A DNA stretch of 64,000 bases from Hyaloraphidium curvatum SAG 235-1 (GCA_025558095.1 JAIVFI010000009.1:310001-374000), one strand, 5' to 3'; numbered from the stretch's first letter, positions 25,790 to 31,290 are shown. Program-made: numbers and translations. The notes: generated from the letters alone by a model not told the origin.

Positions 25790-26576
25790 TCACCGCGGCT
25801 TGGCGGGCTGCAGATCACCACCTGCGAGGAACAGCTCCAGGCTCTTCCTCGTTGGGAGGCAAGCCCCCAAGCACTGCATGAGCAGCGGCTCGCGGGTGAC
25901 TGCGCTCGTAAAGTCTGACAGAGAGACCTTTCCGTCCCTATCGTGATCCAGACGTCTGTGGACGAGGTCGACGAGCTCCCGAACGGCATCGTCCGCATCC
26001 TCCTGGCCGCCTCCTGGAGCCGGCAGGCTCGTCCGAAGGAGCGCAATCATCTCATCTTTCGAGAGGAAGCCATCTGCGTTCAGGTCGTATACGCGGAAGC
26101 AGAACCGGGGCTGTTCTGAAGGGCTCGTGAAGACCGCGAGCCCTCGAAGAGCTTCCTCCCAGCTGAGCAACCCATCCAAGTCGACGTCAAAAACCCGAAA
26201 CATCCGCTCCAAGATCAGAGTCTCCGATATTGGTGGGAAAGCATCGAGGAGAAGCTCTCTGAGGAGTGCCGTTCGCACGGCAACGTCCGTGGCGGCCAGG
26301 GGGCACATTCAACGGTCAGGCTCAGTCCGACAAGCTGCGGCTTAGACTTACCGGAACTTGACTCGCTCCATCTTCTGCGAGTTCGTCGAAAGACAGTCCA
26401 TGAATTTCTGTCTGAAGACTGCCTGTTGGTCCGTCGTGACTGCCGGGACACGGTTCACACGAGTTGGCAAGGTCCTTGCGACCGACATGTCGGACGACAA
26501 CCCCGGCAGCAATCTCACATGGAAGAGGAAGATCTGGAAATGCAGCCAGAGCCGCCTTGGCGCTTCCGGCGGCCAT
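25790..26576 (-). CDS. EFCAB1: calaxin / EFCAB1-like EF-hand protein (axonemal dynein-associated)
   Basis: ERMFRVFDVDLDG..FCFRVYDLNADGFLSKDEM..RLDHDRDGKVSLSDF..EPLLMQCLGACLP; 5' exons approximate. Confidence 0.8.
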
Positions 26577-26709
26577 GGTTTGCTGGGAATTGTGGGCAGA
26601 GTTCTGAGATAGAAGTTGGCCGCTCCTCATAATATGTGTGTTTTAAATGTCACGTTAGATCACCCATGTCACCCCGCGCGCGCGCCTAACCCGGCTATCA
26701 AAAATACGG

Positions 26710-26785
26710 GTGACTTTCCCAAACTATACTGCCGGCTGGCAGAGGTGACTTTCCAGAGCTATACCGTATAGCTCCGAAAAGTCAC
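26710..26785. promoter_or_regulatory. three copies of a ~20-bp motif GTGACTTTYCnnRnCTATAC (two direct, one inverted); candidate recombinase-binding array, mirrored near 31139-31215
   Basis: 26710-26729 gtgactttcccaaactatac; 26745-26764 gtgactttccagagctatac; 26766-26785 reverse complement gtgacttttcggagctatac. Function is inferred. Confidence 0.55.
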
Positions 26786-27672
26786 GCGGCAGTTCACCTC
26801 ATAGGCCGACAAGGTCGGCGACCCCGTGCGCGTCCCACTCTCCGCCCGGCCGCGCGCCGGCCCGCGCAGCGTCGCAGCAAGTACCGCCGCACGTGCCGGT
26901 GGGCGCGGCGGACGCGCTCGGCTGGGGACCTTGTGTGTGAGCGGCACCCCGGGCCTCGAGGGGCCCTGCGGTGTTCCTCGTGGAATGCCCCTCGCCGAGC
27001 TCGGCTGGCTCGGCGGCAACTTTGGCTACGCCGTTTTCTACGGGGATGCCGGGCCCATTGTTTCCTGGAGCTGTTTGTGGAGCCGGGCCGTGGACCTTCG
27101 CGGTGGCGGCGAGTCCGAGGCACTTCCTCGGCTTCGCATGCCTATTTGGAGGCAGGCGTCGCCGCATGCATCTCGCGAGGAACATATTCTCTAGGATTGC
27201 GCGGCTGGATCCGCCCTTGGAGGCCGCTGTACGGGGTTCGCTGCCGGTCCCCGCCGCGGCCCTGGATGTCGGCCCCCACGCTCTCCGCTGGGCGAGGACT
27301 GGCCAGGGAATCAGGGGTAGCAGACCTTCATGGTGCTGGCCAATGCCGTTGGCTAGAAGGATCGCGGCTCCGAGGTTCCTGGCGACAGCTGGGGCACTTT
27401 CGTTGTTTCGGACGCGTTGCTCCCTCACCCCTGGCCGTTACCTCCGACAAGCCAAGATTGGACCTTTGAGAAAGTTCGGCAATCAAAAGAAGCATTGCCC
27501 TCTTGTTTGCCAGAGGTCCTACAGGCCGCAACCCTGTTGCGTACGGGGGGACCCGCACGGGCGCGTATCAGCTTCTTTGCATCTGCCAGAACGCGGCTGC
27601 CGGGGTAACGGGGCCGGGATATGGGTATTTGAAGATGGATAATAGAACGAATTGCGTTCCGATGGACGCTTC

Positions 27673-28767
27673 CTACATGCCCGGCCCCTTCCACGCCGCC
27701 AGCACGCGCCCCGCGAACCTCTCCTTCCCCTCCCGCTCAGTCAGGTACTTGACGGCCTTTGCAACATTGCGAGCAAGCGAGGAGGCATCCAGGTACCCTC
27801 GCTGAACCCCTTTTGGCGCGATGATCAATGTCCTTTCCTCGCTCCCGTAGGACACCGAGCAAGAATGCCGGCGACGACCCATGACGCACTTCCTGAGGGT
27901 CTTGCTCCCCGTCAAGCTTGGTCAGGTAAGGCGCAAGAATCGCAGCTTGCTCGGCCTCGGGCTCGTGGATCACAAGCTCGGGCGGTGCGCGCTTCGTTCC
28001 GTGGTACTCCCGGCCGGCGAGCTCACCCGACTCCACCGCCTCGCGAACCTCTCCTCCAGGGAACCGAGCTCGGAAGCGGGTCCCAAAGGGTGAGAACCTG
28101 GACTGACCGATGTTGCGCGTTGATCTCTGCTTCGCCGAGTCGGCAGTACGTGCGGCAATCTTGTCGGGCGGAGGTGGGTGCCTTCGGGGTCAGAGACTGC
28201 GCTGACATCGCTGTCACCCTGCAGATGCACTCACAGAGGAGCGCTCAGTGTGCGCCGTTAGGGCTCCTAGTACGAGGAACATGTAGGCCATGTTGGAAGT
28301 TGGATTCAAGGGCCCGTGCACAAGTCCTTGAAACTCGACGCTGGCAAAGTTCTTGCCCATGCGATTCAGCTCCTCCACGTCCGCCAGGATGAAAGCAGCG
28401 TTCCTGCCGAGCCTATCAACCCGGGCAACGGCCAGGCCCACGATCGTTGCGTCGTGAGAGAGCCTCCTGAATGCTTCCTCAAGTCCGGGCCGCTGCTTCC
28501 TCCCGTCACCACGCGGGTAGGTGCCGCTGAGAACGTCGCTGTAGACAACTACTATCTTCCCTCTACTATCTCCCTCTTGTTGTCTGTCGCCCAGCGCCGC
28601 ACCAGTCCCTCCTGGTCCTGCAGCGAGATGTTGTTCACATTGTCGTCCTTCGACTTGCGCACGTATGCGATCCAGCGCCCATCCCTCGGCCGAGGATTCG
28701 CGAGGGCCACCAACGACTCCAGCGCCTCTTCGACTGCCTTCAGCGCCGGCTTTTCCCGGGCGGCCAT
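27673..28767 (-). pseudogene. serine recombinase, left copy, frameshifted; predicted intron 28160-28234
   Basis: Mirror of the right copy; 14-bp imperfect duplication at 28549-28562 and one extra base in the T run at 27811-27814 break the frame. Confidence 0.8.
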
Positions 28768-28987
28768 GACCGGCAGCCCCTCCAATGGCAAGTGATTCGT
28801 GCTCGGAGCGGAGTGGTCCCGACGTGACTTTTCCGCCGGCAGCTGCCCCGCGGAGAGTCCCACGGTTCCAGTGCCCCACGAGGCGATGGCGACGGCTCAG
28901 GAGAGCCGCGTTAAGGCCTCTAACTGGCCGTCACGAGGTCGCGAGTGAGAGACCTGCTCGGGTGACAGTCACACAAACTCGGCCAAT

Positions 28988-31290
28988 TCTCTCACTCGCG
29001 ACCTCGTGACGGCCAGTTAGAGGCCTTAACGCGGCTCTCCTGAGCCGTCGCCATCGCCTCGTGGGGCACTGGAACCGTGGGACTCTCCGCGGGGCAGCTG
29101 CCGGCGGAAAAGTCACGTCGGGACCACTCCGCTCCGAGCACGAATCACTTGCCATTGGAGGGGCTGCCGGTCATGGCCGCCCGGGAAAAGCCGGCGCTGA
29201 AGGCAGTCGAAGAGGCGCTGGAGTCGTTGGTGGCCCTCGCGAATCCTCGGCCGAGGGATGGGCGCTGGATCGCATACGTGCGCAAGTCGAAGGACGACAA
29301 TGTGAACAACATCTCGCTGCAGGACCAGGAGGGACTGGTGCGGCGCTGGGCGACAGACAACAAGAGGGAGATAGTAGCTGTCTACAGCGACGTTCTCAGC
29401 GGCACCTACCCGCGTGGTGACGGGAGGAAGCAGCGGCCCGGACTTGAGGAAGCATTCAGGAGGCTCTCTCACGACGCAACGATCGTGGGCCTGGCCGTTG
29501 CCCGGGTTGATAGGCTCGGCAGGAACGCTGCTTTCATCCTGGCGGACGTGGAGGAGCTGAATCGCATGGGCAAGAACTTTGCCAGCGTCGAGTTTCAAGG
29601 ACTTGTGCACGGGCCCTTGAATCCAACTTCCAACATGGCCTACATGTTCCTCGTACTAGGAGCCCTAACGGCGCACACTGAGCGCTCCTCTGTGAGTGCA
29701 TCTGCAGGGTGACAGCGATGTCAGCGCAGTCTCTGACCCCGAAGGCACCCACCTCCGCCCGACAAGATTGCCGCACGTACTGCCGACTCGGCGAAGCAGA
29801 GATCAACGCGCAACATCGGCCAGTCCAGGTCTTCCCCCTTCGGGACCCGCTTTCGAGCTCGGTTCCCTGGAGGAGAGGTTCGCGAGGCGGTGGAGTCGGG
29901 TGAGCTTGTCGGCCGGAGTACCACGGAACGAAGCGCGCACCGCTCGACCTTGTGATCCACGAGCCCGAGGCCGAGCAAGCTGCGATTCTTGCACCGTACC
30001 TGACCAAGCTTGACGGGGAGCCAGACCCTCAGGAAGTGCGTCACGGGCCGTCGCCGTCATTCTTGCTCGGTGTCCTGCGGGAGCGAGGAAAGGACATTGA
30101 TCATCGCGCCAAAGGGGTTCAACGAGGGTACCTGGATGCCTCCTCGCTTGCTCGCAATGTTGCAAAGGCCGTGAAGTACCTGACAGAGCGGGAGGGGAAG
30201 GAGAGGTTCGCGGGGCGCGTGCTGGCGGCGTGGAAGGGGTCGGGCATGTAGGAAGCGTCCAGCGGAACGCAATTCGTTCTATTCTCCATCTTCAAACACG
30301 ATATCCCGGCCCCGTTACCCCGACAGTCGCGTTCTGGCAGATGCAGAGAAGCTGATACGCGCATGGGCGGGTTCGCCGTATGCAACAGGGTTGAGGCCTG
30401 TGGGACCTCTGGCAAACAAGAGGGCAATGCTTCCTTTGATTGCCGAATTTTCTCAGTGGTCCAATCTTGGCTTATCGGAGGTAACAGCCAGGTGTGAAGG
30501 AGCAACGCTTCCGAATCAAAGAAAGTGCCCCAACTGTCGCCAGGAACCTCGGAGCCGCGATCCTTCTAGCCAACGGCATTGGCCAGCACCATGAAGGTCT
30601 GCTACCCCTGATTCCCTGGCCAGTCCTCGCCCAGCGGAGAGCGTGGGGGCCGACATCCAGGGCCGCGGCGGGGACCGGCAGCGAACCCCGTACAGCGGCC
30701 TCCAAGGGCGGATCCAGCCGCGCAATCCTAGAGAATATGTTCCTCACGAGATGCATGCGGCGCCGTCTGCCTCCAAATAGGCATGCGAAGCCGAGGAAGT
30801 GCCTCGGACTCGCAGCCGCCGCGAAGGTCCACGACCCGGCTCCACAAACAGCTCCAGGAAACAATGGGCCCGGCATCCCCGTAGAAAATGGCGTAGCCAA
30901 AGTTGTCGCTGAGCCAGCCGAGCTCGGCGAGGGGCATTCCACGAGGAACACCGCGGGGCCCTTCGAGACCCGGCAGGTGCCGCTCACACACAAGGTCCCC
31001 GGCCGAGCGCGTCCGCCGGGCCCACCGGCACGTGCGGCGGTACTTGCTGCGACGCTGCGCGGGCCGGCGCGCGGCCGGGCGGAGAGTGGGACGCGCACGG
31101 GGTCGCCGACCTTGCCGGCCTATGAGGTGAACTGCCGCGTGACTTTTCGGAGCTATACGGTATAGCTCTGGAAAGTCACCTCTGCCAGCCGGCAGTATAG
31201 TTTGGGAAAGTCACCCGAATTTTTGATAGGCGGGTTAGACACGCGCGTGGGGTGACTTGGGTGATCTAACGTGACATTTAAAACACACAT
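28988..31290. repeat. right arm of long inverted repeat
   Basis: Reverse complement of 26634-28952. Confidence 0.97.
29173..30251 (+). CDS. serine recombinase (resolvase/invertase-type catalytic domain plus C-terminal extension), right copy; predicted intron 29692-29766; one apparent 1-bp frameshift near 29915
   Basis: IAYVRKS (Ser39), SLQDQ, VYSDVLSG, RPGL, VARVDRLGRN; splicing GTGAGT...AAG gives ERSS|IAARTADSAKQRSTRNIGQSRSSPFG, then LVIHEPEAEQ. Confidence 0.85.

Follow-up and report, generated by a model that had tools for sequence, protein, structure and literature searches.

A 4.66-kb palindrome that separates two head-to-head genes in the genome of Hyaloraphidium curvatum raises the question of whether a serine recombinase (SR) can move a DNA element in a eukaryote, and which part of the palindrome would be the mobile unit. 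Eukaryotic DNA transposons are classed by DDE, tyrosine-recombinase, HUH or Cas1-like enzymes. The palindrome lies in a window of 64,000 nucleotides, the whole stretch of DNA that was analysed (contig C9, positions 310001-374000, of an assembly of 31.9 Mb in 55 contigs). A sequence-only reading of this window had proposed a mobile element built around SR genes, of a distinct and possibly undescribed class and present as a head-to-head foldback dimer. With a probability of about 0.55, the palindrome is a defunct head-to-head pair of a 2.34-kb unit that consists of a GTGAC-rich left end, a two-exon gene for an SR of 334 amino acids (aa), a constrained non-coding stretch of about 1 kb and a structured right end, with SR-driven movement of the unit and a history of the site as proposed below.

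The palindrome and its repeated unit

Seven colinear inverted-repeat blocks (26634-28963 against 28977-31290, 90-99% complementarity) form the palindrome. Followed base by base, the arms run from 26634 to 28952 and from 28988 to 31290 around a spacer of 35 bp (28953-28987), which reproduces exactly the limits given by the sequence-only reading. The terminal 20-mer GTGACATTTAAAACACACAT is found in the window only at 26634-26653 (minus strand) and 31271-31290 (plus strand) and had no matches in shuffled sequence. Pfam identifies the genes on either side of the palindrome as one for an EF-hand protein (calaxin-like) and one for an Adaptin_N protein (AP-3 beta-like), and by the coordinates their ATGs would lie 57 + 31 = 88 bp apart without the insert, the distance that had also been given before.

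The two arms are not equivalent. The spacer belongs to the right unit (Table 1), and the left arm, which is turned with its right end towards the calaxin-like gene, lacks the 33 bp of left end that the spacer holds; a small palindrome, GTGACAGTCAC, lies within the spacer at 28962-28972. The palindrome consists of two copies of a unit of 2,336 bp, which meet at their left ends, and is no native foldback dimer. The form that had been proposed for the element thus did not stand, the pair being broken, with two pseudogenes, one truncated left end and arms that appear to come from two lineages. Sub-threshold matches to microRNA precursors at 28903-29037, the only matches in Rfam, were rejected as genes and are regarded as an effect of the hairpin centre.

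About nine loci of the unit were found in the genome, namely the two arms of the window, a full copy (C22:421396-423731), a near-full copy (C2:639742-641904) and pieces on C14, C2, C13, C21 and C8. Five unrelated flanks follow the right terminus (...ACACACAT), in both arms and on C22, C14 and C8; with several copies that share the same sharp terminus in unrelated surroundings, the unit is a dispersed repeat. The search for further copies and monomers, which the sequence-only reading had recommended, was positive in both respects, the genome holding only one palindrome and the intact copy on C22 being a monomer. The junctions in the window and on C22 show no sign of a target duplication. For the C22 insertion, no paralogous empty site was found, the 198 bp upstream being present only on C22 and C2 and the downstream flank being repetitive. 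Two fragments of the unit (C2:641830-641904 and C21:699223-699297) have the same internal end point (window equivalent 31185) and are followed by the same sequence; at both places, a right-end fragment is carried along by another repeat.

Both ends of the unit are marked by short motifs. GTGAC/GTCAC is counted four times in the first 160 bp, five times in the last 152 bp and three times in the 2 kb between them, compared with a density of 1.16 per kb elsewhere in the window. All four occurrences of the 8-mer AAAGTCAC in the unit are within 180 bp of an end. The copies on C22 and C2 match the window from 28955 on, and upstream of this point they are still homologous to each other; just outside the boundary, five of seven bases differ between them, with both sides aligning well. 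Because the window junction lies at the same position, and because of these differences and the clustering of GTGAC and AAAGTCAC at the ends, 28955 is suggested to be a true left end and not a random truncation.

The gene is followed by about 1 kb of DNA (30252-31110 and its homologues on C22, C2 and C14) whose variability is roughly half that of the intron and of third codon positions, with 8.9% variable sites in the 3' region vs 17-20% in the other two. This kilobase is under constraint as non-coding sequence, and its role could be that of a cis site or of an RNA. A second coding gene was rejected, as Pfam gave no match, codon-phase bias is absent and tblastx found nothing similar in the 3' regions of relatives.

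The serine recombinase gene and its protein

The gene structure was set by the protein of a sister family (P0004) together with an RNA-like sequencing run, and the exons were translated one by one in each copy; protein searches used the stored proteins P0001 and P0004 and not the joined exons. The earlier statement that each arm encodes a serine recombinase holds for the domain, with a match to Pfam Resolvase (PF00239) in both arms (right arm E 1e-15, left arm E 1.5e-8), but not for the genes, which are both frameshifted. Exon 2 of the right arm has lost 1 bp in a G run near 29914, whereas in the left arm exon 1 is interrupted by 14 inserted bp (28549-28562) and exon 2 contains one A too many (about 27812-27815). 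The start codon is lost in the C2 copy, and the gene is open only on C22, over 173 + 161 codons = 334 aa.

The joint of the left-arm gene (28159/28235) is present at high depth in the RNA-like run, and its CT..AC on the plus strand corresponds to GT..AG on the strand of the gene. The run was counted as RNA because canonical spliced joints are found in both flanking genes as well. The SR gene of the sister family has its intron at an almost identical protein position. The SR gene has a spliceosomal intron, and spliced RNA exists. From a search of 1.8 billion representative proteins, the 239-aa P0001 was obtained, which is KAI9026854.1 in GenBank, a Resolvase-domain protein of Hyaloraphidium curvatum (99% identical). 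Its model (29173-30251) steps round the right-arm frameshift by two introns that neither the C22 copy nor the RNA joint supports, and the entry is a pseudogene made to look intact by them. Exon substitutions fall on the three codon positions as 6, 7 and 32 between the right arm and C22 and as 12, 13 and 47 between C22 and C2. This third-position bias points to (purifying) selection on a recombinase that was functional while the family diversified.

Seven residues (Y42, R44, S46, D120, R121, R124 and E178) are invariant in 13 relatives and place the protein in the serine recombinase superfamily; the full invariant set across these relatives comprises Y, R, K, S, N, Q, W, D, R, R and E of the serine recombinase active site. 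A PDB search with a single sequence gave no match, whereas the profile search did. The family profile matched Gin (1e-15), TP901-1 integrase (8e-14), gamma-delta resolvase (1e-10), IS607-like TnpA (2e-9) and Bxb1 integrase, and the last match passes the catalytic domain, to chain residue 228. The predicted structure of P0004 (predicted local distance difference test, pLDDT, 68; 60-80) gives alignments to Bxb1, A118-type and phiC31 integrases that cover the catalytic and recombinase domains. With Bxb1 integrase, a Z of 15.8 was reached over residues 37-324 at a high root-mean-square deviation, and structures of the catalytic domain only gave Z values of 14-17.

The domain search that had been proposed for the protein was successful in part, since PF00239 was matched and PF07508 (Recombinase) was not; neither this family nor zinc-ribbon or HTH_7 families matched any of 13 members. 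A zinc beta-ribbon with a coiled coil was not found, the proteins ending at 310-340 aa and the structural alignments stopping at chain residues 277-346. The catalytic domain starts at residue 35-40 of the 332-334-aa protein and the extra domain is C-terminal; that the catalytic domain comes first had been indicated by the sequence-only reading, which set the enzyme apart from the IS607 type. The enzyme is catalytic-first and short and does not have the IS607 layout, and by sequence profile and predicted fold it appears to resemble the large serine recombinases. No other Pfam family matches the open reading frames (ORFs) of the arms, and genes for TnpB/Fanzor, DDE transposase, tyrosine recombinase or reverse transcriptase were not found inside them, in agreement with what had been noticed before.

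Relatives were found in Quaeritorhiza haematococci, Amoeboaphelidium occidentale, Chytridium lagenaria (two genes) and Obelidium mucronatum (two copies), and also on environmental contigs. In a quick maximum-likelihood tree, 15 family sequences were placed apart from 55 other matches, on a branch with a value of 98 in the Shimodaira-Hasegawa-like approximate likelihood ratio test (SH-aLRT). As judged from these sequences, the family is a separate clade in zoosporic fungi and aphelids, and besides Hyaloraphidium it has members in five zoosporic or aphelid genomes. The relatives present in IMG/VR are all distant phage recombinases with no more than 34% identity, and a viral origin was rejected.

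Table 1. Positions of the palindrome, its units and related loci (window coordinates unless a contig is named)
Feature	Position	Strand	Basis
Left arm, copy of the SR unit without the first 33 bp of the left end	26634..28952	-	Inverted-repeat blocks; alignment to right arm, C22 and C2 copies
Spacer, 2 nt (CC) + first 33 bp of the right unit's left end	28953..28987	+	C22 and C2 homologous to window from 28955
Right arm, complete 2,336-bp SR unit, both ends, gene frameshifted	28955..31290	+	Full-length match to C22:421396-423731
Left-end module, four GTGAC/GTCAC motifs in 160 bp, one GAAAAGTCACG box (29106-29116)	28955..29172	+	Motif counts
SR exon 1, 173 codons, intact in right arm; catalytic motif YVRKS, DRLGR motif	29173..29691	+	Exon translation, Pfam
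Intron, 75 nt, GT..AG	29692..29766	+	Homologous to RNA-supported left-arm joint
SR exon 2, 1-bp deletion near 29914	29767..30251	+	Exon translation; C22 copy open over 161 codons
Non-coding 3' region, conserved without codon-phase pattern	30252..31110	+	Variability, Pfam
Right-end module of right arm: 41-bp palindrome 31139-31179, GGAAAGTCACC boxes 31170-31180 and 31205-31215, terminal 20-mer 31271-31290	31111..31290	+	
Left-arm SR pseudogene: exon 1 28767-28235, intron 28234-28160, exon 2 28159-27673	27673..28767	-	Exon translations, coordinates
Right-end module of left arm: terminal 20-mer 26634-26653, GGAAAGTCACC boxes 26709-26719 and 26744-26754, 41-bp palindrome 26745-26785	26634..26813	-	
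8.4-kb family-B element	C9:537983-546391; C4:366970-375128; also C34, C46		
Obelidium mucronatum SR modules	L139:8541-11452 and L140:8571-11453		

Proposed movement of the unit and origin of the palindrome

By analogy, it would be the SR itself that moves the unit. The recombinase would bind the GTGAC/AAAGTCAC sites at both ends and pair them, and the unit would be excised, probably as a circle, and would reinsert without a target duplication. The same scheme of excision and reinsertion is known from the bacterial serine-recombinase elements IS607, Tn4451 and Tn5397.

Several points weigh against this reading. Recombination of the unit is inferred and was not observed. The left end is kept in only three copies, and two of these (C22 and C2) have the same Crypton-like neighbour, so that the left boundary rests on two independent contexts. 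Several copies are 5'-truncated with an intact right end, a state not expected if a serine recombinase acts by way of a circle. Local alignment of the first with the last 220 bp of the unit was not above shuffles (score 23 vs 18 ± 2, maximum 26), by which inverted or direct terminal repeats were rejected and only short shared motifs are left. The centre of the palindrome (28952/28953) is bridged by no independent contig, the public runs being sets of short unitigs. Finally, in the three other informative cases the SR does not stand alone; on C22 a Crypton-like mobile gene lies next to it, and in the sister family (8.4 kb) and in Obelidium (6.7 kb) it is part of a larger repeat, at the 3' end. 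This placement fits a cargo or accessory role as well.

In such a role, the SR would not be the transposase but a module (e.g., a resolvase-like helper) at the 3' end of other elements, and the window would hold two 5'-truncated pieces of a composite; candidate carriers are a Crypton-like element for the family of the window (family A) and a duplication-making MULE-like element for the sister family (family B). This is doubtful, although it is the most serious of the alternatives, and the loci speak on both sides. On C22, the intact unit, which carries the only intact gene of family A, starts some 200 bp downstream of a Crypton-like gene of the same orientation (locus C22:418149-423731). That gene is made up of three ORFs in one frame with the H-x-x-R / H-G-W / Y motifs of a tyrosine recombinase, plus a GCR1_C ORF (E 7e-10), and 10 bp beyond the right end of the unit lies the start of a repeat with at least 40 copies. 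The composite is common to C22 and C2. Matches to Crypton-like tyrosine recombinases also recur at a spacing of about 5.4 kb at C21:157458-169512 and C49:8531-15157, which suggests head-to-tail arrays of another Crypton family.

Family B, whose SR (P0004) has 332 aa and a 49-nt intron, is present in four copies; the element that these share is 97.5-99.9% identical at the DNA level, with 99% matches for the SR protein. In this family, the SR occupies the 3' end of an element of 8.4 kb, which extends from GGCGTGATAT to AAATCGCC (GGCG/CGCC termini) and carries a six-fold TTCAACCCT array at its left end. Target duplications of 7 bp were found on C9 (CGTGGGC) and C4 (GGTCCGG). A serine recombinase would not make 7-bp duplications, and they point to a DDE-type carrier. 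Two exons of the carrier resemble DUF6729 and MULE transposases in a protein atlas, which is a lead only, and neither a word-index search nor Pfam gave homologues of its ORF. The C46 copy has its left flank in common with C9 (over more than 8 kb) and its right flank with C34 (over more than 3 kb), and the 7-bp duplications of C34 and C46 are mismatched; this pattern points to recombination between copies of the element, or to a haplotig or chimeric contig. Just outside the element on C4, a 242-aa ORF with a Phage Tail Collar domain (PF07484, E 2.7e-8; C4:375355-376083, minus strand) was found, which is unusual in a fungal genome.

In Obelidium, the SR is likewise at the 3' end of a repeat of 6.7 kb, which is common to two loci and consists of 3.6 kb at 79% identity, about 200 unalignable bp and a 2.9-kb SR block at 93%. 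The SR block ends sharply 330 bp after the gene, within TTTGACCAAA/TTTTGGTC arrays. The Obelidium module begins with a zinc-finger-like coding stretch (CHCCH...HC.DGF), and a similar stretch is found upstream of the family-B SR (CRRCG...CDDGF) and inside the Chytridium model P0010. BLASTP with the upstream ORFs was not significant except for a weak zinc-finger-like match (E 0.007).

Against the cargo role, the partners differ between the families (Crypton-like vs MULE-like) and only the SR is conserved across all loci, with no conserved neighbours found by tblastx in other species. The motif clusters bracket the SR unit itself, and no mirror of the GTGAC array was found upstream of the C22 Crypton gene. 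SR and partner have diverged to different degrees, with an unalignable junction between them, not only in Obelidium (93% vs 79%) but also between C22 and C2, with 92.3% for the SR block and 87-97.6% for the partner. In addition, the unit in the window has no partner. Taken from the sequences, the pattern of loci fits an SR module with a history of its own that lands beside or inside other elements, and an accessory role fits too. The earlier description of an element built around a serine recombinase therefore stands for the arms, where the SR is the sole enzyme gene, but is to be qualified, as the intact copy adjoins a Crypton-like gene and the sister family sits inside a transposon that makes 7-bp duplications.

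For the palindrome itself, the left arm is a mosaic, and the arms appear to come from two lineages. In the left arm, the inner 830 bp share 99.8-100% identity with the right arm and only 94-97% with C22, whereas for the outer 1.47 kb identity is 97.4-98.6% with C22 and 94-96.5% with the right arm. On these identities, a history of two copies and central conversion is the simplest. Two copies of different lineages would have become neighbours, their left ends facing each other, within the 88-bp promoter of the calaxin-like and AP-3 beta-like genes, and the inner 830 bp would then have been homogenised from the right arm to the left, with loss of 33 bp of one left end; later, both SR genes would have gained frameshifts. 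The pair is unable to move itself now, and the right arm, with both ends kept, could at most be moved in trans by the intact C22 copy.

A fold-back (hairpin-primed) inverted duplication of one copy, at a break just outside its left end, followed by gene conversion of the outer left arm from a C22-like copy, would be another route. Copying back of the bottom strand from a break at 28952/28953 would give the exact layout, with an inverted copy from the equivalent of 28988 and then a 35-nt unpaired loop, and the near-perfect identity of the inner arms fits as well. However, a chromosomal fold-back would also duplicate the AP-3 beta flank, and the left arm instead ends exactly at the element terminus, where it meets the calaxin flank. 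Moreover, the closeness of the outer left arm to C22 makes a second, ectopic conversion necessary, and there is no microhomology at 28952/28988. The fold-back route is thus unlikely and ranks lower than the two-copy history.

An artefact of assembly or polishing is a very unlikely source of the palindrome or of the perfect identity between its inner 830-bp segments. In favour of an artefact is the unbridged centre, and polishing can place reads that lie wholly inside a palindrome on either arm; in part, the perfect inner identity could be an effect of polishing. Short-read libraries under-represent hairpin centres, so a central gap in the unitigs is to be expected. No unitig of the public runs spans the whole 5.3 kb of the locus, but the left outer junction is contained in a contig of a DNA run (26502-26684). 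Over 1.47 kb, the two arms show differences of 3.5-6% and their indels are not the same, the spacer is genuine left-end sequence common to C22 and C2 and not adapter, and removal of the pair restores the 88-bp head-to-head promoter. Even less probable is that the palindrome as such is the active native form of a serine-recombinase foldback transposon, for which its two identical outward-facing termini could serve as perfect inverted ends, since the frameshifts in both SR genes already contradict it, the centre is asymmetric between the arms, only one palindrome is present in the genome, and the intact copy is monomeric.

The outer ends of the pair also touch the flanking genes. In a 2,976-nt contig of the RNA-like run, an Illumina adapter abuts position 31284 and is followed by the AP-3 beta-like gene with a GT..AG joint (31445/31498), which places the 5' end of the AP-3 beta transcript 7 nt inside the right terminus of the element. 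On the other side, RNA contigs of low depth extend into the outer end of the left arm (26763-26913). The outward-facing ends of the element may now supply both flanking promoters.

Known systems and the place of the family

Among known systems, Tn4451, Tn5397 and IS607 would be the closest mechanistic models. With the large serine recombinases (TnpX of Tn4451, TndX of Tn5397, CcrAB, Bxb1, phiC31, A118 and TP901-1), the enzyme shares the catalytic-first order and the full Y-R-S / D-R-R / E set, and the predicted fold of P0004 matches Bxb1, A118-type and phiC31 integrases across the catalytic and the following domain. The absence of a target duplication and the short motifs at the ends, which from sequence look like binding sites, are also in common. 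However, the protein has only 332-334 aa, without a zinc ribbon or coiled coil and without a sequence match to PF07508, and the gene is eukaryotic with a spliceosomal intron and is followed by about 1 kb of constrained non-coding DNA. Full membership was rejected on account of the missing zinc-ribbon domain.

The TnpA of IS607 has an N-terminal MerR-like helix-turn-helix ahead of the catalytic domain and is usually paired with TnpB/Fanzor. The unit is similar to IS607 elements in being small, with a serine recombinase as sole enzyme and with neither inverted terminal repeats nor a target duplication. It differs in that the catalytic domain begins at residue ~35-40 with the extra domain C-terminal, and in that the unit has no second ORF with a Pfam match and no TnpB-like ORF. 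Membership in IS607 was rejected for the domain order and the absence of TnpB. The IS607 family includes eukaryotic and giant-virus copies that are linked to Fanzor2/TnpB (PMC3627910).

Cryptons, which use a tyrosine recombinase and often carry GCR1_C, are linked to the unit by the Crypton-like gene directly before the intact C22 copy, and neither type shows target duplications. In contrast, the arms in the window have no tyrosine recombinase, for which reason membership was rejected, and the GTGAC clusters bracket the SR unit and not the Crypton gene. Elements of the Tn3 family, with a DDE transposase and a serine resolvase, are comparable for family B only, as a duplication-making transposon with a serine recombinase near one end; the identity of the family-B transposase is given by protein-atlas leads, and the element in the window has no carrier. 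Small resolvases and invertases (~180-200 aa, with a C-terminal HTH_7-type domain) differ from the protein in size and in the HTH_7 domain, which was matched in none of the 13 members.

A full-text literature search of incomplete coverage found only IS607-like serine-recombinase elements tied to Fanzor/TnpB reported in eukaryotes, and no paper on serine-recombinase elements in chytrids or on types other than IS607 in eukaryotes. The proposal of a distinct and possibly undescribed eukaryotic class gains from this result, within the coverage of the search, and from the separate clade, the dispersed repeat and the spliced gene, and it goes further than the data in so far as the role of the SR as transposase is deduced by analogy.

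The family can credibly be regarded as a new form of eukaryotic mobile DNA based on a serine recombinase. More tentatively, and at somewhat less than even odds, zoosporic fungi and aphelids may have in it a eukaryotic DNA transposon superfamily that is new, with a short enzyme similar to large serine recombinases (a catalytic and a recombinase domain, no zinc ribbon), an architecture unrelated to IS607 and a tendency to land at the ends of other elements or of its own copies, of which the palindrome would be the fossil of one self-targeted insertion. The palindrome itself is of minor interest as a decayed relic, though its outward end carries the transcript start of AP-3 beta. The recurrent placement beside Crypton-like and MULE-like elements raises the question of whether the SR is a transposase, a hitch-hiker that targets the ends of elements or a resolvase-like helper. 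The family is intron-bearing and transcribed, has evolved under selection and extends across several chytrid lineages and one aphelid. It would offer compact, eukaryote-adapted serine recombinases (~330 aa) for study and, if the proposed movement is true, would add a further enzymatic route to eukaryotic transposition.

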